Below are positions 12,501 through 63,872 of a DNA stretch of 64,000 nucleotides, piece after piece. Positions within the stretch are counted from its first letter, which is position 1. The number at the start of each line of letters is the position of its first letter. The notes under the pieces were generated by a model that saw nothing but the letters and a program-made list of their open reading frames with translations, was not told where the DNA came from and ran no database searches. The DNA comes from Bugula neritina (Eukaryota > Animalia > Bryozoa), in the NCBI GenBank assembly GCA_964035545.1, contig OZ037765.1, forward strand, positions 35,426,080 through 35,490,079, read 5' to 3'. Position numbers and translations under genes: made by a program.

Positions 12501-15500
12501 TATGAATGATTGACGTGTATTGATAGAGTGAGTGGGAAAAAAATTGTCAGAGTAGAAAAAAGAATGAGCTTTCTTTAACACTTTAAAACGGTAAATCTGG
12601 TATATTGAGAGAACTTTATGCTTAGTAAATAGAGGCGCTGATGGATGGTCAAACGGTTTTTTGTTCATGATACGCATTACCTTTTTTTGAAAAATAAAAA
12701 TCTTGTTTAGATGGGTATTAGCTGCATTTCCCCAGGCCTCTGCACAATAATTTAACTTGGAATTGATGAAAGAATTATATATCAAAAGTAAAATTTTTTG
12801 AGGGAGATATTCAGAACATCGGTATATTAATCCACTAAGTGGTCGTAATTTTGTAAGTAGGTTTGAGATGTGCAAGCTCCAATTTAAATTTTTATCTATT
12901 TGTACACCTAGAAAAGTTATGCTGTTAGAGTAATTTATAGGTCTTTTATTTAATAATATACAGTTTTCTAGAATTTGAAAAGGATTTTGGTAGTTTTTTA
13001 AAACAATATAGTTGCATTTTTCATAGTTTATAGTGAGTTTGTTTTTATTGCACCAAATTGACAGAGAGTTTAGATCTTGATTTATAGCTTCCAAATGGGA
13101 GTTCAAATCTTTTGATTCAAAAAATAAATTAGTGTCGTCGGCATAGAAAATGGGATTAAAAAGTTTAAATTGTTGAGCAAGATCGTTTATATATATCAAA
13201 AATAAGGTAGGGCCCAAGACAGATCCCTGGGGAACCCCACAGGTCACTGATCGTGAACTTGATAAGGTTGCATTTACTAGTGTGGAATGACTTCGGTTTG
13301 ATAGGTAGTTAGCAACCCATGACACTGTGGATTCACTAAAACCAAGTTTTCTCATTTTTGCAAGTAAAATATTGTGATTTATAGTGTCAAAAGCCTTACT
13401 AAAATCTATAAAAATTCCGAGAACGCAATTTCCATTGTTAAAAGCTTCGAGCGTATTATTTTTAAATTTAACAACAGCATCTGCAGTACTTAAATTTTTT
13501 CGAAAGCCATATTGATTCTTAGAAATCAAATTTTTAGATTCTAAAAAGTTTAAAATTTGATTGTTAACAATTTTTTCAAGTATTTTACTAAAAATGGGGA
13601 GGATTGAAATAGGGCGGTAGTTTTCACATCTGTCATGAGAACCTTTTTTGTAGAATGGTAATATTTTAGCAGTTTTAATTTGCGCTGGAACAATTTTTTC
13701 TTCTATGCTTTTGTTAAATAAATAGGCAAGTGGTGTAGATAGTGAAATTTTGCAAAATTTGATAAGTTTAGTCGGGATATTGTCTAAACCTATAGCTTTC
13801 TTGGAATCTAGTTTTTCAATGATCTCAATTATTTGAGATTCATCAGTTTTTTTTAAATGAAATTCTTCTTTAGTAATATTTGTCAGCATTGAGTAGGTAT
13901 CGGAGTTCGAATTTGTAAAATTTGAAGCTAGTTTTTGGGCTATTGTTGAAAAATACAGATTGAAATTGTTAGCTATATCCATATTGCTATCTAGCATGGT
14001 TTCAGAGTCCTCAACCGAATACAGTTTTGATGAAAAGCATCTTTTGTTTAGTTTGGCTTTCCCTGTTTGTTCATTTATAAGTACCCAAAGCTGCGAACTG
14101 TTACAATTGCTAATAAAAGCTTTAAAATAATCATATTTAGCGGTTCTCAGATCAGCATTCAAATTATTTCTAAAAGCATTATATCTTTTTAAAATCTTTT
14201 TATTCAGGGGTGCTTTTTTCACTCGTTTGTGAAGTGCATATTTCTTTTTGATTTGAGTTAAAAGATGTTCAGTAATCCATGGTTTTTGTGCAAACTTTTT
14301 AGAAGGCCTATTGTTTTCAATAGTCTGTGAACAACTTTCAATGAGAAATTTTAGTCTAGTAATAAATATATCATAGTTTACTTCACAATTTTGTGAGTCA
14401 TCAAAGAGCTTCAACCAGCAAAATGAGTTTATCTTGGAAACTAGTTTGGAATAATTAATAGTTCTATACATATCATCTGAGACAATATTAGTTCTATTTG
14501 AACAATTCAGTTGAAACGTCACAAAAGTGGGTAGGTGGTCACTCAAATCTGACTCAATGGTTCCAGATTTACCGTTTATGCAAGAGAAGTTTAGAAGGAT
14601 ATGATCTAAACAGCTAGCTCGTGACGATGAGATTCTAGTTGGGAGAGTGATAGCATTGTAAAAGGCATAGGTAGAAATAGTGGTGGAATAAGTGTCACTT
14701 ACATTCATGTCAAGGGTATCTATATTGATGTCACCTACTACAATATGGGGAGAAGAATCATGGGAAATATAAGCCTCCAGGTCACTAAGAAACGCATCAG
14801 TGGAGGAAGCACCGGGCTGCCTGTATATAATTGTGAGTCTGAAATGGGAAGACTTTGAGGCCTGACTGTGTAGAACAAGTGAGAGGACGTCTGCTCCAGA
14901 CAGCGAAACAGCCTTCGTGTCGGCCCCCAGGCCACACCGCACATAGGCCCCAACACCACCTCCTCTACCCAGTCTCTGACTACCTACAAAATCATAACCT
15001 TCAAGTTTAAAAAATTGAATTTCATCATCATTTAGCCAAGTTTCAGTTAAACAAATTACATCAAAGGGGTTAGAAAAAGTGTTCAAAAAATATTCAAAAT
15101 GTGAAAATTTATTTCTAATGCTTTGAATATTAAAGTTAAGAAGAGAGAAAGTTGAATTATTTACTTCTAGTTTGTTAAAAGAAAAGATGTCGTATGCTGT
15201 GCAGTTAATTTCATGCATTTTGCAAAAGATAACTTAGCAGTTTAAGTTAAATACAAAAGTGAGGTACACTAAACACATTTCAGGTTCTCGAGATCATTTA
15301 CATCATTTATTTGGATAGCCTCCGAGTCAGGTGTTCTGCGCAAGTAAATTCGTTGGGCAAATGTCCAAACATACTTATAGTTGTTTGATTTTTTGAAGTT
15401 TAGTATAGCTAATAGTATATAGTATATATATATACTGTGTCACGTGATAGAGTATACAGTGTACACTATACTAGCTAATAGTATCTAGTATATATATACT

Positions 15501-37648: not shown

Positions 37649-40418
37649 CTAAATTCCTAACAATGCCTTTGCTTCCGCAGCCTCGGCGCGTAACGTGTCA
37701 CTGGCATACTTTTGTAGCAATTCCATTTTCTTGCGTCTAACAATGGCCTCCTCTATGTCCTGTTGGGAGGGTACGGGCACGTGCGAGATGAACTGTTTGG
37801 GGCCGTCTGCTGTCTCCAGGACTTTGTTAGTTTCACCGTCTGAGTCATCTGACAGTCTGCTGCCATTAGCCTCAGTTCCATAGATATCCTCTTCCCCGTC
37901 ATCTGCAGTCTCTCCGCCTCCTCTACTTCTTCCCTTTCTCCACTCCTCAATCATTCTCTGCTGCACCTGAGAAATGTTAGCAGATGACTGACCAAGCACA
38001 GGTGTAACTGAACTATTGCTGCCTTAAGGTGTGACATAACAAACCACCCACCTCCTTCTCCACCTCCCTCTCCAGGGGAACCAAGATGCCGTCGTCTTCA
38101 TCTCGGTAGCCGTAGTAGTCAGCATCTATGTCCTTCATCAGCTCTGCTCTTGTCTTACGAGGTGCTGCCGCTGGCTCCTGTACCACATATGAGTCAATCT
38201 CAGACAACCATTCATGATACACCATGATACACTTACCATTATACCAGATATACTTACTACTATACCAGATACACTTACTACTGTACCAGATACACTTACT
38301 ACTATACCAGATACACTTACTACTATACCAGATATACTTACTACTATACCAGATATACTTACTACTATACCAGATACACTTACTACTATACCAGATATAC
38401 TTACTACTATACCAGATATACTTACTACTATACCAGATACACTTACTACTATACCACTTACTACTATACCAGATATACTTACTACTATACCAGATATACT
38501 TACTACTATACCAGATATACTTACTACTATACCATATATACTTACTACTATACCAGATATACTTACTACCGTACCAGATAGACTTAGTACTATACCAGAT
38601 AACAACAACCTATCACTTACCAACTCAAACAGCTCCTTCACTCCAGGCAGGTCCTTGGCAGCTCCGAAATACTTGTATCCTCTGTTTCCTGGAACCTCCT
38701 TCCCTTCGTGGTCCAACATCTTTGGGCCTATCTTTCTGTAGTCTGGACCTCCCAGCTCTTTTATCTGCCAACAAAGGTAAATACATGTGTGCCACAGCAT
38801 GCTGGAGAGAGAGATCAGTGCCTGCAGACAACTTATCTCACTGACTAATATACACAACTCACCCGGTCTTCCCAATGCCCCTTCTCCCGAAGAAGCTTGT
38901 TAATTTCATCGTTGAGATCACGCAATTTGAACTCGCCCAGTCCGGCATTCTGAATTTGAGAAACCTTTTTTGAAACTTCTCCTAGAATTTGGCGCCTCCA
39001 TTTCTCAGCTTTTCTCAGATCATCACACTCTGTGGCCAAGTATGGGCGACGCTCTTTATCTTCTGAAATCAGCCAATCATATATCATAACACAATCAGCC
39101 AATCATATATCATAACACAATCAGCCAATCAAATATCATAACACGGTCAGCCATCATAACGATGTCAGCCATCAAAACTATTGCCAAAACTTGTGAGAAG
39201 CTCTTCTTACAAGAGAGAGGGCATGAGTCCTACCTGTTTGTTACTGAATGGCTCAAAGTAGCACATGCCACCCATTTATTTTACTCGGACACTAAAATTA
39301 ACCTAATTTCAAACAATGAGTTTTTGTTTGAGTGACAAGTTTCATATTTTGCTGGCTGGGTTAAATGTCATGTGTATGGTTTGAAACAAAGATACTTATA
39401 AAAAGAAATAACTAATCACAAATCACAAAATGCTAACTGCCATCGATATTTGTTTTTCAACCAAAAATTATACCTATTAGCAAATAATAAATCGGGAAAT
39501 TGTGAATTTCTTGCAAACTTGTAAATTTATTTTTTCAAATCAGTCAAGCAGTCATTCCAAAAATAGCTGTAAACAACTGTAGCCTATTGTGATAAAACCA
39601 ATTTTGCAAACTGTTTTAATGCAACTCAACCATCTATCATGACAATATTATCCAAATCTGAAAACAATTTAAGTTCATATATCCATTATGAAATAAATTT
39701 CAATGATTACAAAGACAGTCGGTTTCTTAGTACAATTGTTGAACACTCGTATTCAAAAACTTTTAGAATATAGGTATAGATACAGGTCTACACACTTTTA
39801 TATCATATCTAACTCTTTTTGTAAGCATGCATAAACTTTACAACAGAAACTACACATAGGATACCATAAAAATACTCCACTCGAACTTCACTACTAAGCA
39901 TTGCACTTCACAGTCAGATTTGGTATTACATTATACAACTATAATAATTGCCTTGAAAATAAAAAATATTGTTTAAAGTTCGCCAATATTAATTATCATA
40001 AAGATTATACTAATCCATCAAACGTAATAAAACAATTTAAGACCATATCAATCAATATGAATACGAATTCCCCTTATTATATATTTATATTGAACAGTAA
40101 TTAATAGTAACTCACAACGTCAACTGACACTGTGAGTAAGTAACACGGATGGTTACTGATCACCGTCAAGTGTAAACATTTCATAAATATAATACTTATA
40201 GTTACATTTCCTATTGTTCGCAGCTACACTTGCAGTTATTGCAACATCCTACAGGGCTAAAACAGACTCAGTTTTACTTTTAGTTTTAGTTTAATTTATA
40301 TTTAATTTCATTTTATAAGACTAAATACTTCTCTAGTAACTACCGTACCTCCTTTTTCTTCGAATGCTGCTCTCCAACGTGCAAGTGCCGTCATAGCTTT
40401 TTCTGTATTTCTTGCCAT
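37649..40418 (-). CDS. ISY1: pre-mRNA splicing factor ISY1 (NTC/Prp19-associated), 5 exons
   Basis: Exons 40418-40349 (MARNTEKAMTALARWR), 39062-38863 (RRPYLATECDDLRKAEKWRRQILGEVSKKVSQIQNAGLGEFKLRDLNDEINKLLREKGHWE), 38764-38621 (ELGGPDY...GKEVPGNRGYKYFGAAKDLPGVKELFE), 38177-38052 (DADYYGYRDEDDGILVPLE), 37966-37649 (HVPVPSQQDIEEAIVRRKKMELLQKYAS). All junctions are GT-AG and in phase. Confidence 0.95.
38225..38600. repeat. 21-bp minisatellite in ISY1 intron 3, carrying GTAAGT on the - strand
   Basis: ccagatatacttactactata units. Confidence 0.95.
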
Positions 40419-43257: not shown

Positions 43258-44378
43258 ATGCCTCGAATACAATGGAAAAGAAACCGGATCGTGCTGATAT
43301 GCGTCAGCGTTGCTTGTTTTCTTTTACTCAGTTTGAAATTGCTAGGTTATTCCCTCCTCCATCAGAGAGTTTCTGAAGATAGACTTAGGACTAGTAAAGT
43401 ATCTTTTACGATCCCGCCCCTTCCTACTCAGCATAAACTGGCCGTAATAGTTCCGTTTAGAGACAGGTTTGAGGAACTGTTAGAGTTTGTTCCCCATATG
43501 CACAGCTTCTTGAAGAATGCCTCCATAGCGCATAAGATATACGTAATCAACCAGGTGGACACTCACAGGTTCAACAGAGCCTCCCTAATCAATGTGGGGT
43601 ATAAGCTGAGTGTACTAGAGTGCGATTACCTGGCCATGCATGATGTAGACTTGTTACCTCTCAACCCTCTCCTAGACTACGGCTTCCCTGCAGACCACGT
43701 GTTCCACGTCGCCTCTCCCTACCTCCACCCTATTTATCACTACAAGAAGTTTGTTGGAGGGATTTTACTGCTAACTCACGCTCACTTTCAGCGACTTAAT
43801 GGATTGTCTAATAGGTACGTGTGCATTACTCTGTGTACATTACTATGTGTACATTACTCTGTGTGTACATTACTCTCTGTACATTACTATATATATACAT
43901 TACTCTCTGTACATTACTCTGTATACATTACTCTGTGTACATTACTCTCTGTACATTACTCTGTATACATTACTCTGTATACATTACTCTCTGTACATTA
44001 CTCTCTGTACATTACTCTCTGTACATTACTCTGTCTTCATTCAGGTACTGGGGATGGGGTAGAGAAGATGACGAGTTCTATGTACGTATGAAGGAAGCAG
44101 ACCTGACTATTCTCCGCCCAGACCTTGAGAAGGTCACCACTGGCTATAAAACATTTCGCCACATTCACGACCGGAAACGTCGCCCCAGGGACAACAAACG
44201 TTACGGCAATCAGGGACCCTCCGGGTCCCACAGGGACAGAAAAACTGGATTAGCTGATGTAGATTTTGATTTAATAAGCAAACACAGGATTGTTATTGAG
44301 AATTCGCCAGCAACTATATACAATGTTGAGTTACAATGTGATGTTACAGATACCCCTTGGTGTGATGCTCCTACCTAG
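43258..44378 (+). CDS. B4GALT7: beta-1,4-galactosyltransferase 7 (xylosylprotein galactosyltransferase, GT7), 2 coding exons
   Basis: Exons 43258-43814 and 44045-44378. N-terminal type II TM segment, HKLAVIVPFRDRFEELLEFVPHM, FNRASLINVG, MHDVDLLP (DxD motif), GLSNR|YWGWGREDDEFY, and C-terminal TPWC. AATAAA at 44723. Confidence 0.95.
43824..44034. repeat. 14-16-bp minisatellite filling the B4GALT7 intron
   Basis: acattactctctgt units. Confidence 0.9.
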
Positions 44379-46727: not shown

Positions 46728-49557
46728 TTATATTATAGAACATGAGTTCCATATTCTATATAACATGGTAGAGCCAACGGACTCTGGTTCTTTCTCTCCT
46801 TCTATCTGAGTAGCTCCTTGATGGATATCTGTACCAGAAACTCCGTTGTATCCAGGAAACAGGTAGAGTTTCCTTTCATGAGAGAGAGTGTCACTAGCAT
46901 CTACCAGCTGTCCAGTTAGAATGTTCTTCGTTCTCTTACAATATTTGCTGATTCTGTGTTGAACCTGTAATAATATTTTCTAACAGTATCTAGTATATAG
47001 AATATGTAACATGTTTTAACAATATTATATAATATATAGAATATGTAACATAATCTAACAGTATCTAGTATATAGAATATGTAACATACTCTAACAGTAT
47101 CTAGTATATAGAATATGTAACATATTCTAACAGCATCTAGTATATAGAATATGTAACATGTTTTAACAATATTATATAATATATAGAATATGTAACATAA
47201 TCTAACAGCATCTAGTATATAGAATATGTAACATGTTTTAACAATATTATATAATATATAGAATATGTAACATAATCTAACAGCATCTAGTATATAGAAT
47301 ATGTAACATACTCTAACAGTATCTAGTATATAGAATATGTAACATAATCTAACAGTATATAGTATATAGAATATGTAACATAATCTAACAGTATATAGTA
47401 TATAGAATATGTAACATAATCTAACAGTATATAGTATATATAATATGTAACATACTCTAACAGTATCTAGTATATAGAATATGTAACATACTCTAACAGT
47501 ATCTAGTATATAGAATATGTAACATAATCTAACAGTATCTAGTATATAGAATATGTAACATAATCTAACAGTATCTAGTATATAGAATATGTAACATACT
47601 CTAACAGCATCTAATATATAGAATATGTAACATAATCTAACAGTATATAGTATATAGAATATGTAACATAATCTAACAGCATCTAGTATATAGAATATGT
47701 AACATAATCTAACAGTATATAGTATATAGAATATGTAACATAATCTAACAGCATCTAGTATATAGAATATGTAACATGTTCTAACAATAGCTTCACAATA
47801 TCCCCAGCCTGTAAACTTTCATGCAGTTATAGCTTAGCCGATTAAAATTTCAATCATATACATGCTATTGGTTCACAGGAATATCAGTAACAAATACCAA
47901 AATGACTAACAACTGAAATATTAAAAACTAAAACTTAATCTCATATAATATTTCTTAAGCTTTTAGCTTTCAATTATTTTCCAAGTATCTGTTATGTTTT
48001 GATGAAACTTTTTGTATCATGTAACACATTTACCGCTTTGTAGATCTCATGCATATCACGATGACAGGCATGTCTGTAGAGAGTTCTGACCAGACATCTG
48101 ACTAGTAGAGAACCGTACACAGGATGTCTTATAGACACATAGGCTATAACAAAGTGAAAACTCTAATATACTATATATGGTACATCATCAGTACTCTCAG
48201 ATATGTACATATGTTCTTATGCTTTACCACCTAATTTATACAACTGATAGTATGCTATAGGCATATATATGAACCCACTGTAAATATTGCAACAACAAAA
48301 AATACTACTGAGGTAGTCACAAAGTGAATAGCTTGATCGATTTTTTTTACAAATTTACACTGTGTCACAAAACTCTATAGTTCCAAGGTAAACCAACATT
48401 AAAATCACATACAAAAGACTACTTTTGAAGAACAGTTAAGATACTCACAATCAAAGCTGGCTTTTATAACAAACAGGTTTTCACAGTGAAGTGTCTCAAT
48501 TCCATCTCCTTTATAATATCCACCAGAGAAGTACTTTGGAGGAGTGAATACTTCTGGTTGAGTCACACTCTCATCTTCATCACCAAATTCATTGTCTCCT
48601 CCTGTCTCTACATCCTTGTGTCCTTTCTTACCCAAATCTTTTCTACCTGTTTACCATGGAATATTGAAGCAGTTATTGTTAAGCAGCAGTTGAATAGTAC
48701 CAGTAAAAGTGCACTGTCTGTGACTGTATTTCAAATAAATACAACATATCAACTCAATAGAAACTCACCACCACTACAAGCTTGGATAACAACCAGTTTA
48801 GGTTTATCAGCAACCACTGGGTTCTGAGGAACAGATAGTACGTCATACAGGTCTGTCAGTTTCACCAACTTTCCATCTGAACCATAGACATGACCCTCAA
48901 CTCCATGAGATCCAATAAACAGGAAGAACATCCCATAGTCTGCATTCTTCACATCATTCACTTCTTGCTTTACTGTTTCCCACATCTCCTGTGGTTACAT
49001 TCAGTATAATGTGAAAACTTTGTCAGCAGCCAAGTGAAGAAAATAAATATCATTTAATGAATCATTCTGTTTGTTGCAAATTAGTCTGCATATTAAGAGA
49101 ATTGAGTTTTTCATAATATTTAGGACTTTTCTGATTTGAAGTATCCCTCATCAAATTCTTTCTTTTCCAGTAATTTGTTGTGAAATAACCACTGTATGCG
49201 TAAAATCTAAAGATGAGATTTTGCTAATTGAAGTTCATTTTGCATGTTTCCTACCAAGATATCATGATTGAGAAGGTTCAAATGAGACATTTTAATGTAA
49301 CCATGGTATGTGTAAAATAACAAAGTATACTATAATAAATATTTAGCTATCGTTTTTTTCATTTATAAAACACAATGTGTCAAAACCTGAGCAGAGAGGT
49401 CCTTTTTGGTTACAACATCAAACTGAAAGGAGTTCAACAAATGTTCTAAATTTTTAACATCTACATCAGAGCCCTGTCTATAATAATCTGGATGAGCTTT
49501 CACTTCTTTGTTGTTGATTAAAACAGCTCTGCCTCTTCTCCTAGTCATAGGAAACAC
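46728..49557 (-). CDS. caspase (peptidase C14) domain exons, p20 and p10
   Basis: MTRRRGRAVLINN..RQGSDVDVKNL; FIGSHG (catalytic His); KPKLVVIQACSG (catalytic Cys); p10 SYVSIRHPVYGSLLV; RKLYLFPG. Confidence 0.9.
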
Positions 49558-49942
49558 CTGGATGTTGTAGATATAAGTAAATTAAAACTCAATACACAAA
49601 ATCGCAAAGCTGACAAAACGTATGCAGACGGTTGATTCAAAATACTATTCCTTGTAGTCTTTTCAAAATTTTGCTCACTTTATCAGAGTTCAAGAACAAG
49701 TCTGTAGTTTTCTGTTTAGATGTAGGAACAGGTGTCTGGTGAAGAAAAAGTTTCTTTCTGTCAGCATCAGCTTTGGGCACCAGATAGTCATCATCATCAG
49801 ACAAATCACTTTCTTCATGTTCCTCACTGGGCTGACTTGATGTAGTCGGTGTAGTTGTAAATAGCCCTAAAATAACTAATGACTCTACTACATGTATCTA
49901 ATAACTGTTGTGTTTACATCGAGGTTATATTATAATTTAGAG

Positions 49943-50028
<86 letters not shown>

Positions 50029-53000
50029 TCCGGGCATGCGTGGTGTTACGCTAGTTGGTTAAACTCGTGCTTGAGAATTTTAGTTCGATTTAAATAAATT
50101 ATATATTTGATTTGATTGCAAATTATATTTGATTGCTCATTCAAATCTTACAATATAACAATAACTAATTTGTTTTTATATTTTAAATAGCAAATAATTT
50201 GGTGATACAAGTTTTTGCAGTTTGAAAAGTTGAGTAAATACCTGATTTATTTTCACCTCTCTTTATAGCATTGTTTTCTTCTTTCAATTTGGTAACATTT
50301 GCTTTCAATTCCTTTATTTCAGACTCCTTCAAATGAACACCTGAATTCAATCAAAACAATTATACAATAAAGTGTATATTTGAAACATGCTGGAGCAAAA
50401 ATTTGTGATAAGCTCAAAAATTTGATAGTCTTTAATAATTGCTTAGCTAAATATTTAAGAAATTGAAGCATTTAAAAGACCTAATAAACCGGTAAAAACA
50501 ACTCTATTTGCAGCAATCTGACTTTGATCTCAATTTCATATTATTCTGATAACCAAATTTTGCTATTAAACTATTCCAACACTAACTTACATGGGTGAAC
50601 AAAAAGACTCCGAATCTTATCTCCCCCACAGCGAACTGTCACCATCTTCCTCTGGAACGCCTGATATGGTTTCTCAGTTTGAAAGTCATGACACCATTTG
50701 GGAGTTACCTGAACTTTAGGATTAGATTCACCTTTCAATATGCAGTGTGTACAACTAGACTTGTGAACCATTCTGCTGGCAGGCCAGGAACTTCGAATCT
50801 CCTTGGAGATTTTCCTGGTTATACTGACCATGTGCTCCCAGCAATCTGTGATTTTCTCTACTGCTCCGGACACTGTAACATCTGCCTTCCTTGAGAGGCC
50901 ATCATGGACAAGGCGCACCGAGATATCATCAGGAGATATTTTTACACCGTTTTTTCTAACAGTTAAAGAACTTGTTTCATCTGGGAACATATTTAGCACA
51001 ACAACACTCATCTGTTGGTAGACATATTGTGGAATTGAGAGACCTTTGAACATGATCTCAGCATGGAGAATGATGTCTTGATCAGTGGTAAAAGTGTTCT
51101 CTATGTAATCAGGGGAGTGGAAGGGTACAATAAAACAGCTCTTTGATTCCAGATCAACTGGTCCGTAAAGAATGCTGAATTTCTGCAGCAAAGTGACAGC
51201 AAGTTGATATGCATCTTCATCAATGAATGCTGTCTCAGCTTTGATTAAATATTCAAGAAGTTGGTTCCCCATGATTCCTGCCGACAAGAAAAATTCCATG
51301 AAATTATCAAACTGTTCTTTCTCAAGAAAAGCTCCGTTAGTCAGTAAAAGTGGTTCAAAATTTGCTTGCCGAGTCTGCCAGACTTTTTCATCGTGATTAA
51401 ACAAGACTGTGAGTAGTTTAGTAACTTCCTCAATCTTGTGAAAAATAATCTGGTTCAACTCTTCAATCTCCTTGTACCACAAGACTTTACCACAATCATG
51501 CATGTAGGTGAGGATTGTGGTGAGCTGATCAGGTGTGATACTTCCATCTACTTGCTGCACTGTGCGAAGTATCTCATCAAATGTACTGAATGCTGTTTGT
51601 AATCCTAAGACTTTCTCATTCACATCTTCCCACAGCTTTGGCAGCACTTTCACAAAATTTTGAGCTGAATTAAAAATGGCAGTTTTCATGACTTCGTATG
51701 TTTGATAATTATCTTCTTTTCCAACTGAGTAGATATCTTCTTGCAAGAACAGCTCTCTGTGTTGATAGAAGTGCTCTATCTTTGCTATGCTTTGGTCAAG
51801 TTGTTTCTCTTCTCTCATGATTTCATCTTTCAGTAGATCAGCTGTGCTGGTGAAAGCAGTAGTCAGCTTTGTGAAATTCTCCTCATCAAACTTGTCTTTG
51901 TGAGTAAACACAAGTTTTGGTGGTCCAATGCCAGGGTTTGCCACGTATAAATGAGCCAGCCAATCAAAAGCCAGTCTTCTCACAGCCTCTCTGTCTCCCT
52001 TTTCTCGCGCCAGCTGATCATACTGCTCCATGTTCACCACTACTATCTGGATGCAGTTCTGTTTAAGTGTTAACTGGTAAGTCATGTGGTACACTGGTTG
52101 TCCTCCCATGTCAATTAGTCTCAGAACCGTTTTATTTACTTTCAACTCTTCAACTTTAAAGACTTTAGTTGTTTCATCAACAACAGCCTCAGGTTCACGA
52201 TTTGTCAGCACTCTCTTTCTCTCTTCACTCTGCAATGTTCTGATGAGACTTGTCTTCCCTGCCATTGTGTTACCAATCACTGCAATGGTGACTAGTGGAA
52301 GACTTTTACCTTCACCTTTAGCAAGATCTCTGTAGTACTGTCTGATTGCTGGCAATCCTCTGGTGCAGACTTCATAAGGGGGAGTGGTTAGAAACGTGCA
52401 TCCATCAGCCTTTATCGTTTGCAACTCCTTCAAGTTGCAGACTGCCTCGGAAATTGAAGCTAACTTGTTTTTCTGAATATCCAAAGACTGCAGATTTTCT
52501 AAGTGTTTCAAACTGCAAGTTGGATAAAAAAAAGCACATAAATAGAATTAGATTCTTCCAACTGCAGCAGTTTCTAACAAATTAATCTGATCTCTATTCC
52601 TGATTAAATCTGCTGTTTTGTTGCAGATATTTTGGCCCTTCTAATATATTCTCACTTGAAGTAAGTTTACATATTAGTGCTTTGTTTAATTTTGTTCTTT
52701 CTAATAAACACTATTTTATAATACATTTCATTTATTTTTCAGCCGTGAAACAGGTGAAAACAGTATTTCGGTTTGCCAATGATTTTAACTGCATTTTTAT
52801 AAGTCACCATAAAGTTTAAATATTAACATACAATCATAAATATTGAGAGCCTACAAATGCATATTGGATTTGATGGATGTCAAAGCTGATATGGGAAATA
52901 TTTGTTTATTGCGCAATTGATGGGCTTAGCCTAGGGCCACACGGTGCGTATTTCCGCATGCAAAAACTGAAATCACAAGTAGCAAAGGTGCATGTCCACC

Positions 53001-56000
53001 GTAGCGTCAGTGATGCGTGATAAATAAAGCTTCTATTTTTAAATCGCACTCGCTTTCAATAAAACGAAATTTACTGCAATGTAGCACTAAAATAAAGAAA
53101 TTGGGCTCTCTGAATAACTAGCAGCCAATTAGGTGACGACGACAGAGACGATTCGCACTTGTCGCTCAGCATTCTGAACAACAAGTGCGAATGTTTTCTC
53201 AACGCGCACAGTGGACACCTTTGCTACTTGTGATTTCAATTTTCGCATGCGAAAATACGCACAGTGTGGCCCTAGGCTTATTCTAAGTTGTATATTATTC
53301 TTTAATGTAGCAATTAGTGCAGGTAACAGCATAATGACAATGAGTTTGCCTCTAGAGAAGAATGCAGATGCTACAACTATAACTGCTTCTGCACCAAGAA
53401 TGACTAGTCCCAATGAAAAGAACCAAGACTTCCACAGTCCACTTATTTCTAGAAAAAAAAACAACAGGCAACTCAATACAAGAGTAGGCTAAAGGAATAA
53501 ATGGGAAAGTGTTATTGGTCTACATGAGACTGGGGAGTGTAACTTTGAAAGAAAGCTGTTGCTAGCAACATGTGCTATAAGTACAGATTTGTATTCACCA
53601 GCTAGACGCCCTGCTAAATCTACGTCAACATAGTCAAATCCTACATTAGAGTTATAGCATACAAGCTTCTGTATCCATGGAATTAATCTATCTACAAAGG
53701 GTTTGCAGTAACATACAGAGTTAAAAAGGCTGCCTTGTTGCTGTTATACCACAAAAGGAGCTAGAAAGACTTTAAAATGAACTCAATGATCATAAAATTT
53801 AGATTTGAAATTGAACGGCACTCATTGCAAAAGTTGCGCAACTATATTTAGATGCATGAAATCATGAATTTTTTACTCAAACTGGATTTCGTACAAGCTT
53901 TACCAGTGAAATATTATAGTGTTAAACATCGCTGATTGACTGAGTTTTACTTGGTCTCTTCTTGACTCAGCAATGCTAAAAGAAAGATCTCCTATTTTGA
54001 CTATTTGAGTTTCCTTGACATATTGCATGCATTTAAAGAATTTTATAGCTTCATACATTGATACAAAGTTGTGTCACCAGCTACTTTATAGTTTTCATGA
54101 TACACTGAGGCTATATAGTGTCTTGCAGTACTTCATGGAGAGGCACAGAAAGCAAGTTAATTGGCAGCTATAAGCCATGCAGTAGTGTTCAACTAAACAC
54201 TGTGAGTATTTCTAAGTTCCAGCTTGCATGAAGGGCAAGTAATTGGTATTGGAATGCAAATTAAAAACTGATTTGGCAATAAGAAGTTATTACAACACAA
54301 CCTGGAAGAATACAATTTCTTGGAATGCAATTTCTTGGTAGAACCATTGTTTCAGTTTGCATCAAAACTCAACATTCGATTTAGTATTCAGTTTGTTTAA
54401 TATAGTTTCTCTTATCACACACACTTGTGAGGCTTTTTGCAATAAGCAACACACTTGTGAACAAATTAATTTTAATAAACTTTATGCAACTTTTTTCTCC
54501 TATGAAAGAGGTTGTATTCTGCTGACCATTGCAATCTCAGTCTAGTTTATGAAAGCTGATTTTAAATGTTTTTGAACTTTTCAAGAAATTTTTTCAACAA
54601 ACTAACTTTAAGATATTATTCTGTTAAAAATTTTTGATTCGAATGGAACGGAGAGAAAATTAGTCTTTCATATAGTGCATGTGTGGGGTGTTGGCCGAAA
54701 AATTAAAAATTTTATACATTTTTGAAACACAGTATTCAGCATATATTATAAAACTTTGGTTTTACTATTGGAACCTTAGTTTGAGTAACATAATATTCTC
54801 TACAACATGTACAAAACTTTTTGAAATACAAACTTAAGCACTATTTACAGCAAGTGCAGCAGCTCCATGGTTTTAATCGAATAATATAAAAAAATTGAAT
54901 TAAAGTAGTAATAGAGTTTCGTAACACAAATTTAAAAGCAAATTCTACAGAAAATACAGAACTATAAATGAGCAAGTATACCTGGAACACTAAATAATTA
55001 GCAATTCATATAAATTTGCTTTCACTAACCTCTCAGGTAGAGTTGGTAGTTTACAGTTACTAATATCCAACTGCTTTAGAGATGTCATTGATGTGACTAC
55101 ATCAGGTAATCCTTCACTGAAGTTATTCCATGATATATCAAGAGTCTCCAGATTCTTCAGATCAGACATGCTATAATAAACATATACTAGTTGAGACATA
55201 ATATATTCTAATATATGATTTAACATAATACAATAAAATATAATATACAATATAAAATTTGATCCAACATATTATATTAAAATATATTACAATACAATAT
55301 AACACAATATACCAAATATAAAATTTGATATAATATATTATATTAAAATTTAATATATTTTATCATAATATACTGTAATATATATAGTAAAACTATACTA
55401 TAGTTGAGATAGGCTGTATTATATTTTAATATAGAATAACATATATTATGATATACAATGATGTGACAGAGTATACAATATAAAATATTGGAGTACATAT
55501 TGTAAGATAATATAGCGCATTATAATAATTTAGTGTAATATAATATAATATAATACAATATACCACTTATAATAGCACTTTCAATTCCATGGAATGTTTG
55601 TAACAAGTAAAACTATATACAAACATATTATCTTATCTGTGATTATAATTGGATGTCTGATCAAAATTATTATAGAAATCAATATTTTTCTTGAAGGGAA
55701 CTGAAATTTCTAGATGAGCATTTTATATATAAAGTTGCTTTTACTAACCACTCAGGAAGAGTTGATAGTTTACACTCAATAATATTCAACTCTCTTAAAG
55801 ATGTCACCGGTGTGAATACATCAGGTAATCCTTTACTGAAGTTATTCCATGATATATTAAGAGTCTCCAGATTCTTCAGATTAGACAAGCTATAGTAAAC
55901 ATATACTAGTTGAGATATAAGTTATATTTTAATATGATATAACATAATACATACAATAAAATAGATAATAATACAATATAAAATTTGACAGTAATATAAT

Positions 56001-59000
56001 ATTATATTGAAATATAATATAATATAGCGTGTAAAGTTATCACTGAGCATAATTAATTCAAGCAGTAAAAGTAACATAGTGTAATGAATACGTAATAGTT
56101 AATCGGGCATTCAGCGTTGCGTTTAGCATAACGTTTCACTCAAATAGATTATCGCAGATTCCTGCCTGCAACGGCTGCTAGTTGTAAATTCATTAATTAT
56201 ATAACAGCACGCTCTCGCTCATTGGCTGTGGCTTTATGCTTTGGCAGCCCGGATGTTTCAGTGCAGGCGTTGACCCTACAGTTAGTAGAATAGCATCAGC
56301 TAGCAATGCAAGTTCATCACATCAATAACAATCAATTTTAAATGATGTAATTAATAAAATATAGATGAATTTAAATTGGAATTAACTTAAAGAGGCACAG
56401 GTTAGTTTTGTCTTTCAGTATTTGTAATAATTTGAAGCTTTCTTTAAGTATTTTTATCTATTTCAACTATAAGAATAACTATTTGGTTTATTAAACATGT
56501 TTATAAGTTTGACAATTTTTAGAATGCCAGTGTGGTCAGTGCATGATAGAATTCATGGCTATGTGTTTATTTCACAATAGATTTCTCATAAAATTACAAA
56601 TTCTTAAGGCAGGCTCTCCAGTGATTGATTAGTTTGTCACAAGATAGTATTCTAATTGGCAGTTAAAGCCTTATTTTTATACTTACAGCATTTTACTGCA
56701 GCTACTAATTAAAGTCAACATTGAATATAAGTTTTAATCTCTGTCTATATGAGCTATACATTCATTCTTACTAATTGTCTCAACATTTGTCTAATTGCAG
56801 TTATCATTTAATGTCATTTTTATTATAGTTTGATATTTTTTAGTAGACCTGTAATACCGTTTCATAGAAACAAACTCACTCTAGCTAGCCACTAAAAGAA
56901 GGCAAGAGGTGATTAAATTAATATCTGTAAATATGTTTGAATACTTTACAATTTCATAAATAATTTTCTGTTTGTTTCATTTTAAAAACCTGTTATATAA
57001 TTTCATTTATATTAATAACCTACTTTTACAAAACTTTTCTTACGGCAGTTGGAATAAATAAAAATAAAGTTACTAACACCAACACCAGTACAACTCATCT
57101 ATAGTTAGTGGCGACGCTACATAGCGTAATGTAATATAATACAAAATTATATATTATAATACAACATACTATAGTCAACATGTATATAATAGTGAAGATA
57201 TCCTATAATATTATATTATAATAGAGTATAATATATAATCATAATATAACGTAATGCAGTATAGTATATTAACATAAAATAGCATAATGCAGGGTAATAT
57301 AATATTATGCAATACACTAGGTAAAAAAGCACTCAAAATTCTAAGAAATATGTTTGTAACAAGTAAAACTATATACAAACATACTTTCTTTGCGATTATA
57401 ATTGGATGTCTGATCAAAATTATAGAAATCAATATTTTTTTGAAAAAAAACTGAAAATACTAAATTGACATTTCCTATATAAAGTTAATTTTACTAACCT
57501 CTCAGGTAGAGTTGATAGTTTACAGTTACTAATATCCAACTTCCTTAGAGATGTCATTGATGTGAATACATCAGGTATTCCTTCACTGAAGTTATTCCTT
57601 GACATATCAAGAGTCTCCAGATTCTTCAGATTAGACATGCTATAGTAAACGTACATAATACAGTATATTATACTAGCTGAGATATGATATATGCTAATAT
57701 AAACTAACACAAAACGATGAAATATAATATAGTACAATATAAAATTTGATTTAATATATTGTCAACTTGTGCTATTCACTAATTATATGGATATTTAAAA
57801 CTGAATGCTAATAGCCCGCCAATGTACAGTATTGAGTATATAGACAAAGTTTATTTAGTACGAATAATACAAAAGTGAAATAAAATACATAAGTGAGAAG
57901 AATTACATAACTTAACAATAACGATGCATGCAACTTAACTATTCAAATGCTACTCTCTAACTGCATTCTGCTGATCCAAGCTGCTAATAATTGTATGATC
58001 CTTTGCATTATCCTGATTGGTCTATCCTATCCAATACCATGGGAGATGGCAGAGTAGCGTAGGCTGGTATTAGACTAGGGAGTAGCTTAGCGTATCGTAG
58101 ATGATTGCAGCGCTAAAGTATTCGAGTGAGGTACAGGAGTTGTCACTTCTGATGCACCATGATTCACCGCACCCCCCTATCTATCATAAGGCATGGCTGC
58201 TGATTAACCAACATATCAGAAGTTTAAAAAATATGACAATAATGAACAACACAAAAATATGAGTCATTTTACTTAGTTTAGTACAGACTGGAAATCTCCA
58301 GTTTTTAGCTATTTTTCACACTCTAGCTGCTAATGACCATGGGTTTTTGCCCAAAACTAGTAAAACATCAACAAATACACCTTGACTACAGTCGCATGCT
58401 CTCGCAAGGGTGTCTTATAGTCACGCCTCAACTCTTGCAACTAAGCTTGTGTTTTTTTGACAGTGAGTCTGGAATAGGCCCTCACTGCCTCAAAGATGCT
58501 GTTAACGTTTGGGTCAATACCTTATTTTTTTTACCGTTCCCGTTAAACTAATCTGTAGCTGTATCAGAGCTCCACATCTTCTTCTCCACAAAAATCGAGA
58601 TGTTGTAAATGATATCTGTCCATAGGCAGCGCTGCGCCACCTATAACATCTTGTACAGCTACGAGTGCCTTTTCCTCAGGCTCTAGGCGAGGCACCTCCT
58701 CCTTGTCGCTAGCCATGCTCCTCTACTCCTTGGTAAGGGGCATCGATCTCAATTAGATCCCACTGCTGCTATCACTGTGGTGAATTTATGGAGATAAATC
58801 ACCTTGTGTGGGTTATTGAGAATCTAAGAGCATGTAGCGTTATGTGTGCAAGTGTGTGTGTCAGAGTTGTCAGTGATACTAATTTGTGTGCGTGCAATAA
58901 TCCAATACTAACTATAATGGCGATAATAATCCAAGCAAGAAAAGCTACATAATATAAGATTTACATTGGGTAAAAAGAAAAAAATACAATCTACAAGTAG

Positions 59001-61677
59001 CTACTAAACTAAGCCGGCTCTTCTAGAACACAACATGGGGCTGGTACAGGGCTAGTGTTTTATACCTGCGCAGCCTCCTCTGATGTAAAGTTAGTATAAA
59101 CAGCTATGTGATCGTTAGCCAATCAAACCGTTGGGGCATAATGAATGTGTAAACAATAGTGTGAATTGTCACTGATGTTGGGTGTTGTGATGTTTAGCCT
59201 CGGTTAAGCGCGTAGCAAATGAATGCACTGAAAACTTTTACAATATTTTCTCCTTTTTTTGGAAAACTGTGGTTCCATCGTGGTCACAGAGTTAATTAAT
59301 TCCTCTTAATTTGAGACCATGAGCTTCCTTTAAGCCTAAATAGAATGCTTTAATGCCCCTTCTGTCTGCTGCCATTTGAAGTTCTATTGCTTTTTCTTGC
59401 CACCATCGAGGTTTTATTTTTTGGCATACCTCTGAAGACTGCTTTGTGATTTTCAGTAGGTTTTCCTTTTCAATCTGGTATGACACTGGATGAAAGCTTG
59501 TCTTGCCTTGTTTCTATTCTCAATCAACTGTCGTAGGAATTCATCATGTTCATTTAACCAACATTAATTTTTTTGTCTTTGTTTACTAAGCACTTCACTA
59601 GCTGTTGAAAACACTGTTTTCTTGAAAAATTTATCTATGTCATCATTATTTGCATCCGAACACTTTATATTCTCATTCAATTCCTTTTCAAGTTGTTTTC
59701 TTTTTTTCGACTGTTCAGCATGCCGCAGTGTTTAGTTTAATTAATGGCTTAGATCCAGTTTTCTTGTGATGTAATTTTCTTTTAATCTTTATTTTTGATT
59801 TTAGCATTATATGATCTGTGCCACAATATACTCTTCTTACAGGTCAAGTATCTAAAACCACACTCAAATTTTTATGGGTCATAGTAGGAGCATATATTTG
59901 CTAATAAAAGTCGCGTAAAATAATTTTTGGAGAGAAAGCCTAAATGTCATGATTCAGTCATTTACAGGAGTTGGTTCTTCATCCAAGGTTGGCAGCAATC
60001 TCATTTCTGAATGCAAATCTCACCCTTGCTTCTCTTCTTTCATCAGCTGACTTTCCACTTCAGTAGAAAGTATAGCCATATTCTATTAAGGTATCACCAC
60101 CTGGAAATCTTGTGTCACTAAGTGCGGCACAAAGCCATATGTATCCATGGCCATGGCCACAAAAGCTGTCTGTCTCTCTAGACGCTGCAATTGTGATCAA
60201 TCCATCAGTGTTTGTACATACCACTCTGCTACATATAAGAGGACATTTCTTCTCTTTTCCATTCTGTCTCCTAGCACACTTTTTGCTTACTGCTGCAGGA
60301 GTGAGAACAGATCAGCTTGAACCTTGTTATTTCGAGCAACGTCCAAGTCAGCATGAACTTGTTTTTGACGTAGCATTTTATAGAAACTGCTTACAAAAGA
60401 TTTAAGGTATAACCTATAACTGGCTTTTTCATGACCAATAGCACACACTTGGACGAAAAAGCCTAGAAATGCTGACCCCTTCCTTATCTGTTGCAGTGAC
60501 TGCATGACCAAGAAATAAGTATGCTAATCCCTGCTCTTTGGAAATGTGTCACCTCACATTGACTGGCATGGTCCACCACAGACCTAAGAATGCCCATGCA
60601 GTCCCACTCACTAGTTAGCTTGGTCATTGACCACTCGACCCATGGAACACGTTGTACCGATTTTTATGGTTATCTGGTAGCAGGCATTATACTTGACCTG
60701 ATCTGAATTACTCGATAAAAATTTCATATAAACTTGCTTTGACTAACCTCTCAGGTAGAGTTTGTAGTTTACACTCAATAATATTCAACTCTCTTAGAGA
60801 TGTCATTGATGTGAATACATCAGGTAATCTTTTACTGAACTTATTGAATGACATGTCAAGAGTCTCCAGATTCTTCAGATTAGACATGCTATATTAAACA
60901 TATACTAGTTAAGATATAATATATTCTAATATGATTCAACATTATACAGTAAAATATAATATAATACAATATCAAATTCGATATAATATATTATATTAAG
61001 ATATGATGTAACATAATACAGTAAATAATAACATACAATATAAAGTTTGATCTAATATATTATATTAAAATATATTACAATACAATATAACACAAAATAC
61101 CAAATATAAAATTTGATATAACATATTATAATAAAATATAATATATTTTGTTATAATATATTGTAATATATATAGTAAAACTATACTATAGTTGAGATAT
61201 GCTGTATTATATTTTAATATAGAATAACATATATTATGATATACAATGATGTGACAGAGTATACAATATAAAATATCAGAGTACATATTGTAAGATAATA
61301 TAGCACATTATAATTATTCAGTGTAATATAATATAATATAATACAATATACCACTTATAATAGCACTTTCAATTCCATGAAATGTTTGTAACAAGTAAAA
61401 CTATATACAAACATATTATCTTATCTGTGATTATAATTGGATGTCTGATCAAAATTATTATAGAAATCAATATTTTTCTTGAAGGGAACTGAAATTGCTG
61501 GATGAACATTTTATATATAAAGTTGCTTTCACTAACCTCTTAGGTAGAGTTGATAGTTTACACTCAAAAATATTCAACTCTCTTAAAGATGTCATTGATG
61601 TGACTACATCAGGTAATCCTTTACTGAAGTTATTCCCTGATATATTAAGAATGTCCAGATTCTTCAGATTAGACATG
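46728..61677 (-). CDS. LRR-ROC-COR-caspase fusion protein (Roco-family GTPase with C-terminal C14 caspase); 5' end not resolved
   Basis: In-frame exon chain on -: 61677-61537, 60888-60748, 57639-57499, 55889-55749, 55170-55030 (LRR cassettes); 52512-50591 (LRR+ROC+COR); 50340-50257 or 50242 (coiled coil); 49866-49679 (acidic linker); 49557-49387, 48988-48769, 48646-48449, 48143-48034, 46964-46728 (caspase, TAA). All junctions are GT-AG with compatible phases. Confidence 0.8.
46977..47787. repeat. 36-bp minisatellite in the last caspase intron
   Basis: aacagtatctagtatatagaatatgtaacataatct units. Confidence 0.95.
49944..50024. repeat. (TA)n microsatellite
   Basis: Direct reading. Confidence 0.97.
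50591..52512 (-). CDS. exon encoding terminal LRRs, ROC GTPase and COR domain
   Basis: LRR cap LTTPPYEVCTRGLPAIRQYY, P-loop GNTMAGKTS, G3 DMGGQ, G4 THKD, and COR-type LTYMHDCGKVLWY. Acceptor ttgcag at 52513 and donor gtaagt at 50590. Confidence 0.9.
52929..53277. mobile_element. PIF/Harbinger-type (Tourist-like) MITE
   Basis: About 60-bp TIRs starting GCCTAGGGCCACAC, flanked by TTA on both sides (52926-28 and 53278-80). Confidence 0.85.
55030..55170 (-). CDS. 141-bp two-LRR cassette exon 5
   Basis: MSDLKNLETLDISWNNFSEGLPDVVTSMTSLKQLDISNCKLPTLPE. Confidence 0.85.
55749..55889 (-). CDS. 141-bp two-LRR cassette exon 4
   Basis: LSNLKNLETLNISWNNFSKGLPDVFTPVTSLRELNIIECKLSTLPE. Confidence 0.85.
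56030..57121. mobile_element. probable solo LTR in the LRR exon array
   Basis: TGTA...TACA termini, 5-bp TSD TAGCG (56025-29 and 57122-26), AATAAA near the right end. It interrupts the repeated intron sequence. Confidence 0.65.
57499..57639 (-). CDS. 141-bp two-LRR cassette exon 3
   Basis: MSNLKNLETLDMSRNNFSEGIPDVFTSMTSLRKLDISNCKLSTLPE. Confidence 0.85.
58261..58368. mobile_element. fragment of the 4734-5150 MITE family
   Basis: gagtcattttacttagtttagtac...gctgctaatga...gggtttttgccca matches the MITE arm. Confidence 0.65.
59230..60420 (-). mobile_element. degenerate RTE-like LINE fragment
   Basis: Interrupted frames include WWQEKAIELQMAADRRGIKAFYLGLKEAHG and endonuclease-like DTRFPGGDTLIEYGYTFY*SGK. 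Multiple stops. Confidence 0.65.
60748..60888 (-). CDS. 141-bp two-LRR cassette exon 2 (absent from ORF track)
   Basis: MSNLKNLETLDMSFNKFSKRLPDVFTSMTSLRELNIIECKLQTLPE; same phase-2 splice sites as the other cassettes. Confidence 0.85.
61537..61677 (-). CDS. 141-bp two-LRR cassette exon 1
   Basis: ag|C ATG TCT...CCT AAG AG|gttagt; MSNLKNLDILNISGNNFSKGLPDVVTSMTSLRELNIFECKLSTLPK. Confidence 0.85.
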
Positions 61678-62017: not shown

Positions 62018-62478
62018 TGTGACAGCCGATAATGGTTACTGTATCAGCTGATAATTGTTGCTGCGTCAGCACGGATGCTGTTTGGCACAGATGCCTATGT
62101 ATTGTAATTCACTTAATGAAGGGTGAAAGGATGGAGGACACAGAAGCAGGCCACAACTCTATTTTTGTCTATTGCCAACAGTATATTTTCTAAGTTAGAC
62201 TTCATTCATACTTAAACTCATATTCACACTTGTACTCATACTGTAACCTATAAACATAAAAATTACAAAAATCTTGTTAGCTGACAAAACATTTAGTTAA
62301 TGAAGTTCAAAACAAAAGATAATATAATACTTGATACTCACAATTATTTTGACAATTAGGTATAGATTGCCTGCATGCATCTTTAGCAGGAGGAAAACTG
62401 AGCTACACTGACTCATCGACCAAAAACTGAGAGTAAATAGCTATCGCGAAAGCTTTCACAAATAGCTTTCGTTACACA
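62018..62478 (+). mobile_element. possible LTR (TGTGAC...GTTACA followed by TGGT)
   Basis: Begins exactly where the LRR-array intron homology ends. It has TG..CA termini, but no partner LTR or TSD is visible. Confidence 0.3.
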
Positions 62479-63872
62479 ATGGTATTTGAAAAGCTGCCAA
62501 AAAGCCACTGCAACACCGGAGGAGCGAGTTGATTGAATTAAATTTCTAATTTAATCAAAAAATAACAATAGAACAAAATATAAAGGCAACAAAAACATAG
62601 CATTGGAATGTAACAAAACTTAACGGTAAGCAAAAATACTATTTGGCTTATCAGATATATTGCAAACCTCACTGTTAAATGTAGTGTAAAATGATTGTTT
62701 GGTTTGGCACCGAAACGAACCTAAAAGCGCACCTAGTCGACTGAGACAAGCAATGCAAGGTTCTGCACTGCATGAATCACCCGGCCTCTTTGCACCCTGT
62801 ATGAACCCCAACCCCTGAGCCAACTTTAAGTGTTTTGTATTTTACTGCAATTGTCTGCTCCTGTCGCTACATCTCCAACTTTCCCTCTGATCACTGGGCG
62901 TCACTATGATGATTTTCAACTTTCTGCTAACCCAATCCGCTAAATTGATATTGCTCTTAATTCACCACCACTCACTCGAGTTACCTTCGTAGCAATTTGA
63001 ATCTTTCCTATTTTAGCCTTGTAAAAATGTCTTGCAGTACTTGCTTGAGATTTATCATACACTGGATTTGTGGAAACTTTTTGTTGGTATGGATCTTGAG
63101 GAGTGACTTTTTTCAATTTTACTTCTGGTTCTTTCGGACAGCTTTTACACTTCCAAAAATAGGTTAAAACTTGAGCAGTATTTTCTTCACAATTCAGTAG
63201 TTTGTTGGACTCGTCTATTCCTACTGTGGAAGGAATGACAGGTTGGTTGCTGTCATCAGACTGGAGGTCATGCTCATCTGCTGAACTATCTGAAGTCTGC
63301 AGCAACAAATTTGTTGGATGCTCAGCGTCACCTTTGCTTTCCTCTTGCTTCACTTGCGAGAGACCTAACTGAGATCCAGATGGTTGGCTGGAACTTGTGC
63401 CAGACACTGACTGACTAACTTCACTACTCTGACCCAGTGTGGTATATTTAAGAGTGTTGCCATTAGCAAATCTTACGGAATCATATGGGCGCCATTATGC
63501 CGAGATTGGTATCGCGAGTTTATATAAGTTATAAAGGAAAAATTTTGCCACTTTTGTTATTTTATTTTTTTTCTATTTTATCTGTACATTTTTTTTAATT
63601 TTTTTTATTGGTAAAGTTTTTAAACACATTTTTAATGCACATAAAATTAAAAGAAAAATTAAAACTCAATCATGCACATAAATACAAAGCTATAAAGTTA
63701 AAGCTTCGCTGTGATTTTAATGTGAATATGAATTGAATAATGCTTGTAATAACCATTATACACAAAATACGTTACAGTTGCTATAAATGTAAGACTAGTT
63801 AATTGGATGCAAATAGGCACGGTAATACTACTTAATTTATGCTATTTTTGAATTTTGTATTAAATATTTGGC

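Follow-up and report, generated by a model that had tools for sequence, protein, structure and literature searches.

The stretch of Bugula neritina DNA analysed here (64,000 nucleotides, called the window below) carries on its minus strand a gene predicted to join LRRs, a ROC-COR module and a caspase in one chain: five LRR exons, one ROC-COR exon, two linker exons and five caspase exons. All 13 exons are free of stops, all introns are GT-AG, and the phases agree from one exon to the next (2,2,2,2,2,1,1,0,0,1,1,0; each exon was checked separately). The parts of this LRR-ROC-COR-caspase gene and the neighbouring genes, numbered from the first letter of the window, are:

61677 to 46728, minus strand: full chain, 13 exons, about 1,280 codons, closing in frame
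61537..61677, minus strand: LRR exon 1, the first exon identified, 141 nt, two LRRs, phase 2-2
60748..60888, minus strand: LRR exon 2, 141 nt, phase 2-2
57499..57639, minus strand: LRR exon 3, 141 nt, phase 2-2
55749..55889, minus strand: LRR exon 4, 141 nt, phase 2-2
55030..55170, minus strand: LRR exon 5, 141 nt, phase 2-2
50591..52512, minus strand: large exon with the last LRRs, alpha0 helix, ROC GTPase, COR-A and COR-B, 1,922 nt, 640 codons, phase 2-1
52251..52274, minus strand: P-loop (G1), GNTMAGKT; G2 Thr115, G3 DMGG and G4 THKD follow further on in the same exon
50628..50753, minus strand: C-x-H-C ... C motif closing COR-B, nearly invariant across 99 family rows
50585..50590, minus strand: phase-1 donor gtaagt, by splice-site reading, bypassing the stop at 50573-50571
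50257..50340, minus strand: linker exon 1, phase 1-1, with an alternative donor giving an end at 50242 in the same phase
49679..49866, minus strand: linker exon 2, phase 1-0, S-D-L-S-D motif and the segment leading to the caspase
49387..49557, minus strand: caspase exon 1, R-Q-G-S with the Arg of the S1 pocket
48769..48988, minus strand: caspase exon 2, S-H-G with the catalytic His (48907-48905) and QACSG (48784-48770) with the Cys (48778-48776)
48449..48646, minus strand: caspase exon 3, in which the small subunit begins after an acidic intersubunit linker containing several Asp
48034..48143, minus strand: caspase exon 4, S-I-R-H-P (Arg341 equivalent) and the G-S-L-L-V helix
46728..46964, minus strand: caspase exon 5, K-L-Y-L-F-P-G dimer strand, 39-residue tail and stop (46730-46728)
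43258-44378, plus strand: gene of Glycosyltransferase family 7, by eye similar to B4GALT7, split by a tandem-repeat intron and converging on the 3' end of the Roco-caspase gene
37649-38875, minus strand: ISY1 splicing-factor gene
12348-15218, minus strand: intact endonuclease-RT LINE frame, 956 codons

The ROC-COR exon ends CCA T/gtaagt, with a donor at 50590 that matches the consensus at 8 of 9 positions, and the stop that read-through would reach sits 6 codons beyond it. A first-pass annotation of this DNA had placed the donor here and drawn an in-phase path from ROC-COR through the linkers into the caspase; its coordinates, donor and path all proved correct. The start of the gene may be an ATG within LRR exon 1 or may lie in an exon further upstream: LRR exon 1 has a phase-2 acceptor, so that upstream coding exons may exist, possibly past the window edge. 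A 184-codon Ser/Gln-rich open frame is present upstream of LRR exon 1 (62943-63494, minus strand); as a candidate first exon it was rejected, having neither a Pfam match nor a counterpart upstream of the paralogues.

Repeats are found in and around the gene. About 340 nt upstream of LRR exon 1 (62020-62360), 74% identical and inverted relative to an intron stretch at another family locus (L008), are probably a dispersed repeat. The 3.1-kb intron between LRR exons 2 and 3 contains broken frames (57800-60700) that look mobile-element-like by eye, and no Pfam match was obtained with two pieces of this intron. The last caspase intron holds a 36-nt minisatellite in 22 copies (46979-47786), and a (TA)40 run lies between the two linker exons (49945-50025).

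An exon-by-exon Pfam scan returned Roc (E 2e-7, above the cut-off) and COR-A (E 6.5e-5, below the cut-off), plus LRR. Two marks of a Roco protein are present: a ROC GTPase with G1-G4 (Pfam and motifs), and a COR directly C-terminal to it (a weak Pfam COR-A match together with a match in fold). The G1-G4 motifs are conserved in 93-99 of 99 family rows, and the C-x-H-C ... C motif at the end of COR-B is a possible candidate for a metal site. Among sequences with solved structures, those nearest to the large exon are the C. tepidum and Methanosarcina Rocos. A single-sequence AlphaFold model of this exon had a pLDDT of 34, and an alignment-based model (monomer, single exon; pLDDT 90.9, pTM 0.88) was used instead: its best structural matches are LRRK1, C. 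tepidum Roco and LRRK2 (E 1e-20 to 1e-15), with alignments that span the whole LRR-ROC-COR over 550-700 columns, and the isolated COR 3dpt was also matched. A search of the ESM Atlas gave Roco clusters only, all below 0.9, the top one being a cyanobacterial COR+CHAT. By Pfam and structure match, a NACHT or NB-ARC ATPase is absent and the nucleotide module is a Ras-like ROC GTPase.

Linker exon 1 encodes a short amphipathic, coiled-coil-like helix. The acidic S-D-L-S-D motif of linker exon 2 (49810-49796) belongs to a D-x-x-D type that is kept in the window, at most genomic loci and in 10 of 13 bryozoan database proteins; rather than being cleaved, it may serve as an acidic site for a kinase. 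Beyond the linkers, Pfam Peptidase_C14 was matched on two caspase exons. The His-Cys dyad is intact (S-H-G and QACSG, both in the exon at 48988-48769), and motif comparison gives an Asp-specific S1 pocket, in which R-Q-G-S, the Q of QACSG and S-I-R-H-P supply the equivalents of Arg179, Gln283 and Arg341. Large and small subunits are complete, with an Asp-bearing intersubunit linker, and the exon order matches that of full-length fused caspases through K-L-Y-L-F-P-G. Judged on its sequence, the predicted caspase is catalytically intact; the initial claim of an intact GTPase beside a complete caspase agrees with the presence of G1-G4, His and Cys, the Asp-pocket residues and all subunit exons.

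A CARD/DED prodomain or other death fold gave no Pfam match in the exons scanned or in full-length Watersipora fusions. Caspase exon 2 is closest to caspase-2 and then to caspase-8; the whole Watersipora caspase domain scores about equally to caspase-3, CED-3, caspase-9 and caspase-8, and the caspase tree, which has no reference caspases and in which long branches meet, cannot class the caspase. By analogy it would work like an initiator, though without an initiator prodomain. At three paralogous loci (L004, L005, L006) the Gln of QACxG in caspase exon 2 is replaced (H-A-C-S-G, E-T-C-S-G and E-V-C-S-G) while His and Cys are kept, hinting at altered substrate specificity within the family.

At the other end of the chain, the five LRR exons are 87-94% identical to each other and were recently duplicated along with flanking intron. 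Among them the amino acid varies at 9 of 10 exposed beta-strand positions, which were picked from the LRR motif in advance, versus 12 of 36 positions elsewhere (Fisher p 0.002), and one position holds four different residues. LRR pN/pS is about 1.5 (1.3-1.5), a ratio that comes from few changes and whose excess over 1 is not established. The signature supports a putative diversifying ligand-binding surface in the LRR region. Ectocarpus ROCO genes show a like pattern of LRR variation, which has been read as immune (PMC3341825), and the same reading has been given to bacterial AP-GTPases with such fast-evolving LRRs (PMC8195603).

All named close homologues of the large exon are bryozoan (Bugula neritina, Watersipora subatra), and the gene in the window, initially taken to stand alone, is by this comparison one member of an expanded bryozoan family with relatives in both. 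At nine other distinct loci (L001-L006, L008, L010, L011), 32-80% identical, a GT donor occurs one base past the last COR Pro codon, GT[AG] having a background frequency of 2.8% per position; the read-through tails beyond it are unconserved and of random length (1-77 aa). This recurrence and the unconserved tails put the COR donor beyond chance. Eight of the nine loci continue with an acidic linker exon, S-[DE]-[LVC]-S-D (generally phase 1-0), and then with caspase exons in the same order. L011 and its allele, L012, have the donor followed by linker 1, and their sequence runs out before any caspase: the 1.2-1.9 kb at hand (L011:2546-3718, L012:3398-5328) contains neither an S-D-L-S-D exon nor a caspase. 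This family member may have a longer linker or a different C-terminus. A locus search with the single large exon gives only these two near-identical ENA loci, whose short flank has no caspase.

Among database models, at least eight from Watersipora in RefSeq carry, on a single chain, ROC-COR plus a caspase that is complete or nearly so (XP_067947674.1 and XP_067948342.1 among them), and three from Bugula neritina are partial fusions; some RefSeq models end after the linker or place the caspase in a separate gene. Annotation of this kind may err, and the raw loci were therefore read directly for donor, linker and caspase exons. Public records name family members “MFHAS1 homolog,” “CASP8” or “uncharacterized protein.” Other caspase fusions were also seen: long LRR-caspase fusions without a Roc match (P0256, P0257 and P0259, from ENA) and ankyrin-caspase fusions (P0200 and P0255, from Logan). 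Purifying selection acts on the ROC, COR and caspase exons (dN/dS 0.16-0.29 relative to the two closest loci), and ROC-COR and caspase identities to the window covary (Spearman 0.72, p 0.045, for 8 loci that are not independent). With phases that fit, no stop, and the same layout kept at other loci, the proposed fusion into one gene is supported.

Four runs, one recorded as RNA-Seq and three of guessed type, were aligned to 50070-55190, a region chosen clear of the (TA)n run and the minisatellite and lying outside the caspase exons; the runs derive from other individuals, perhaps other lineages. None of the runs listed matches the window copy well as RNA, and most RNA contigs are paralogues at 86-92% identity. 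In three runs there are head-to-tail joints at exact LRR exon boundaries, those of LRR exon 5 being among the boundaries used, which indicates, at the level of the family, that it is transcribed and that its LRR exons are spliced as modelled. The junctions 50591>50340, 50257/50242>49866 and 49679>49557 were not seen in the four runs over 50070-55190, where the intron after COR has no coverage; one contig departs from the genome at 50593, adjoining the donor, and carries on for 314 further letters. No long contig at 99% identity or more was listed, only short 97-98% pieces on the ROC exon. A short inverted-end element in the LRR5-ROC intron (52930-53280), probably a MITE-like repeat, is extremely abundant in RNA-type contigs.

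What might such a protein do? We think it reasonably probable that the single LRR-ROC-COR-caspase chain would serve as a cytosolic danger or non-self receptor in which self-association of ROC-COR activates the caspase; the immune role is proposed because of analogy. At rest, the LRR arc would be folded back onto ROC-COR and the caspase would be off, as in LRRK2 and C. tepidum Roco. The LRR would be opened, and the GTP cycle driven, by a ligand on its concave face or by the protein being recruited to a membrane or to the surface of a microbe. Self-association of ROC-COR, possibly aided by the linker-1 helix, would then bring two caspase domains together, taking the place of a CARD/DED platform; caspase catalytic domains can be activated by forced dimerisation (cited in PMC2575513). 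The caspase would cut after Asp within the intersubunit linker, and possibly also at S-D-L-S-D for self-release, and would then cleave downstream substrates, leading to cell killing or signalling. The order put forward in the first-pass annotation, from ligand binding to ROC-COR dimerisation and then caspase activation, is not supported in that form. The C. tepidum protein, the best-studied bacterial Roco dimer, is dimeric in its empty or GDP-bound state, and GTP causes it to become a monomer with its LRR opened (PMC5714945, PMC11052575). If the bryozoan protein behaves in the same way, dimers could form in the GDP state that follows hydrolysis and not while GTP is bound: since GTP splits the C. 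tepidum dimer, activation may come after hydrolysis or through clustering at a surface, or else ROC-COR may hold the caspase in check. More tentatively, cheilostome bryozoans may have independently built and expanded GTPase-gated single-chain caspase receptors that do the job of an NLR inflammasome, with specificity coming from duplicated, perhaps alternatively spliced, symmetric 141-nt LRR exons.

Restraint is the basis of one alternative, which we consider rather improbable: ROC-COR would be a restraint or localisation module whose GDP dimer holds the caspases inactive, until GTP opening, or cleavage of the acidic linker by another caspase, frees a self-dimerising caspase. Monomerisation of C. 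tepidum Roco by GTP fits this, as does the finding that COR-B interface mutants raise LRRK2 activity (PMC5714945, PMC11052575). So do the conservation of the D-x-x-D-type linker motif across bryozoan loci and proteins, and the roughly 90 linker residues, which permit loose coupling. Caspase-2 and caspase-8, however, to which caspase exon 2 is nearest, require induced proximity, and the linker motif is followed by D, V, E or P, which are poor caspase P1' residues. A different doubt concerns the ligand. The fusion could be real and serve programmed death unrelated to infection, or the control of self and non-self between colonies or with symbionts, as in polypide turnover or allorecognition, with LRRs that read host ligands. 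Variable LRR faces suit any diversifying ligand, the caspase is intact, and allo-incompatibility in colonial animals, bryozoans among them, involves cell death (PMC8195603); but a family of this size, with exons duplicated in tandem, resembles those of pathogen receptors (PMC3341825), and we hold this use of the protein to be unlikely.

The remaining alternatives bear on the gene itself. Roco and caspase could be two adjacent genes, or a caspase-less LRR-ROC-COR isoform could dominate, with the fusion minor. RefSeq does annotate one Watersipora locus in this way, with 121 nt between a Roco model (P0042) and a separate caspase gene; in the window, an ATTAAA at 50436 lies inside the intron after COR and an in-frame ATG (49548) lies in caspase exon 1; and the two ENA loci with donor and linker 1 have no caspase in 1.2-1.9 kb. 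Yet the phase-0 linker donor at the split Watersipora locus fits the caspase acceptor, the phases and the linker motif are conserved family-wide with many full fusion models, and the contig that leaves the genome at 50593 does so beside the donor, the intron itself being uncovered, so that separate genes or a dominant short isoform seem very unlikely. There is also the question of whether the window copy might be silent, a recently inactivated duplicate in a birth-and-death family, as could be read from the lack of a long, nearly identical contig. This we find very unlikely: about 1,280 codons contain no stop or frameshift, the splice sites are all canonical, the terminal branch is short and under purifying selection, and the RNA runs come from other individuals, perhaps other lineages.

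If the window gene is the receptor proposed here, with a caspase switched on by self-association of ROC-COR, a protease output would be added to those of animal Roco proteins. Intracellular immunity in bryozoans is barely described, and the Roco-caspase family gives it a concrete candidate. What the ROC-COR monomer-dimer cycle does in LRRK2 is still debated; a native Roco with a proximity-activated caspase makes that question directly testable, for the caspase, if the model is right, would report dimerisation directly and provide a natural read-out of nucleotide state for Roco dimerisation and signalling.

With MFHAS1/MASL1, C. tepidum Roco and LRRK1/LRRK2 the bryozoan proteins share the order and fold of LRR, alpha0 helix, ROC and COR-A/COR-B, and the G1-G4 motifs; where LRRK1 and LRRK2 carry a kinase they have a caspase, while MFHAS1 is without an effector. 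A Roco review mentions neither caspase nor protease (PMC6337361). Roco-TIR and Roco-Death combinations have been noted in Aplysia and other animals. The suggestion that the architecture is uncharacterised in animals is not supported as it stands: it has precedents in amphioxus models and in bacteria (PMC8195603), and it is the bryozoan family that appears to be uncharacterised. No paper on a bryozoan Roco family or an animal Roco-caspase, and no functional test, was found in a search that left subscription journals mostly uncovered.

In bacteria, LRR+AP-GTPase+COR+caspase is listed as a predicted counter-invader system (Kaur et al. 2021, PMC8195603; e.g., OQX07365.1), the caspase being one among at least 24 effectors (PMC8195603). 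The window gene has the same domain order of LRR, GTPase, COR and caspase, and fast-evolving LRRs are common to both. The bacterial systems are known by prediction only and have swapped effectors, whereas bryozoan members with an identified effector all have a caspase; and the window gene, unlike them, has an animal QACxG caspase spread over five exons. A caspase of this animal-type, intron-rich form would argue against descent from a bacterial fusion.

Twelve amphioxus models combine LRR and caspase with ROC and/or COR matches (e.g., XP_002614028.1). They have the same architecture as the bryozoan proteins, the same five-exon caspase layout, which may be ancestral, and a phase-1 intron after COR, but their ROC-COR is only 22% identical to the bryozoan one, their caspases are 24% identical and do not group with it, their LRR-ROC-COR lies in one exon, and the S-D-L-S-D linker is missing. 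Effectors are swapped among Branchiostoma LRR-Roc-COR proteins (P0138, P0149, P0151, P0159, P0218 and P0222) between OTU, GT4, Death, caspase and combinations of these, as in the bacterial systems. In a ROC-COR tree of 47 rows, made by a quick method after 17 rows that were near-duplicates or short had been dropped, the bryozoan proteins form a single, well-supported long branch, separate from other animal Rocos including shark MFHAS1. The caspase fusions of amphioxus nest among that animal's Rocos carrying OTU, GT4 or Death effectors. A single clade of all caspase-bearing proteins is rejected (p-AU 5e-8); rejection of a clade uniting the bryozoans with the whole amphioxus effector family (p-AU 0.011) is only moderately safe, given the long bryozoan stem. 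The better reading of this quick tree with its long branches would be that the bryozoan and amphioxus fusions arose separately. The findings suggest that a sensor-GTPase-caspase design had separate origins in bacteria, in amphioxus and among bryozoans. In 2008, hybrids of amphioxus named “LRRs-caspase” were put forward as a shortcut from recognition to apoptosis, with the GTPase unmentioned (Zhang et al., PMC2575513); these may or may not be the Roco-caspase models found here. A paper on amphioxus caspases (PMC3196919) mentions neither LRR nor GTPase.

The Ectocarpus LRR-ROCO genes (PMC3341825) resemble the bryozoan family in one-exon LRR modules, exon duplication, a variable concave face and family expansion, and differ in their 72-nt exons, in having no caspase, and in formal positive selection, which in the bryozoan gene is only suggested. 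NLR inflammasomes and the Apaf-1 apoptosome follow a like functional logic, with a repeat sensor, a nucleotide switch and a proximity-activated caspase, and the functional analogy drawn in the first-pass annotation is supported by this sensor-switch-protease anatomy. The construction is different: the bryozoan gene has no STAND ATPase, CARD, PYD or DED, its sensor is N-terminal, its protease is part of the same chain, and its product would be expected to act as a dimer, as opposed to the wheel of the NLRs and Apaf-1.
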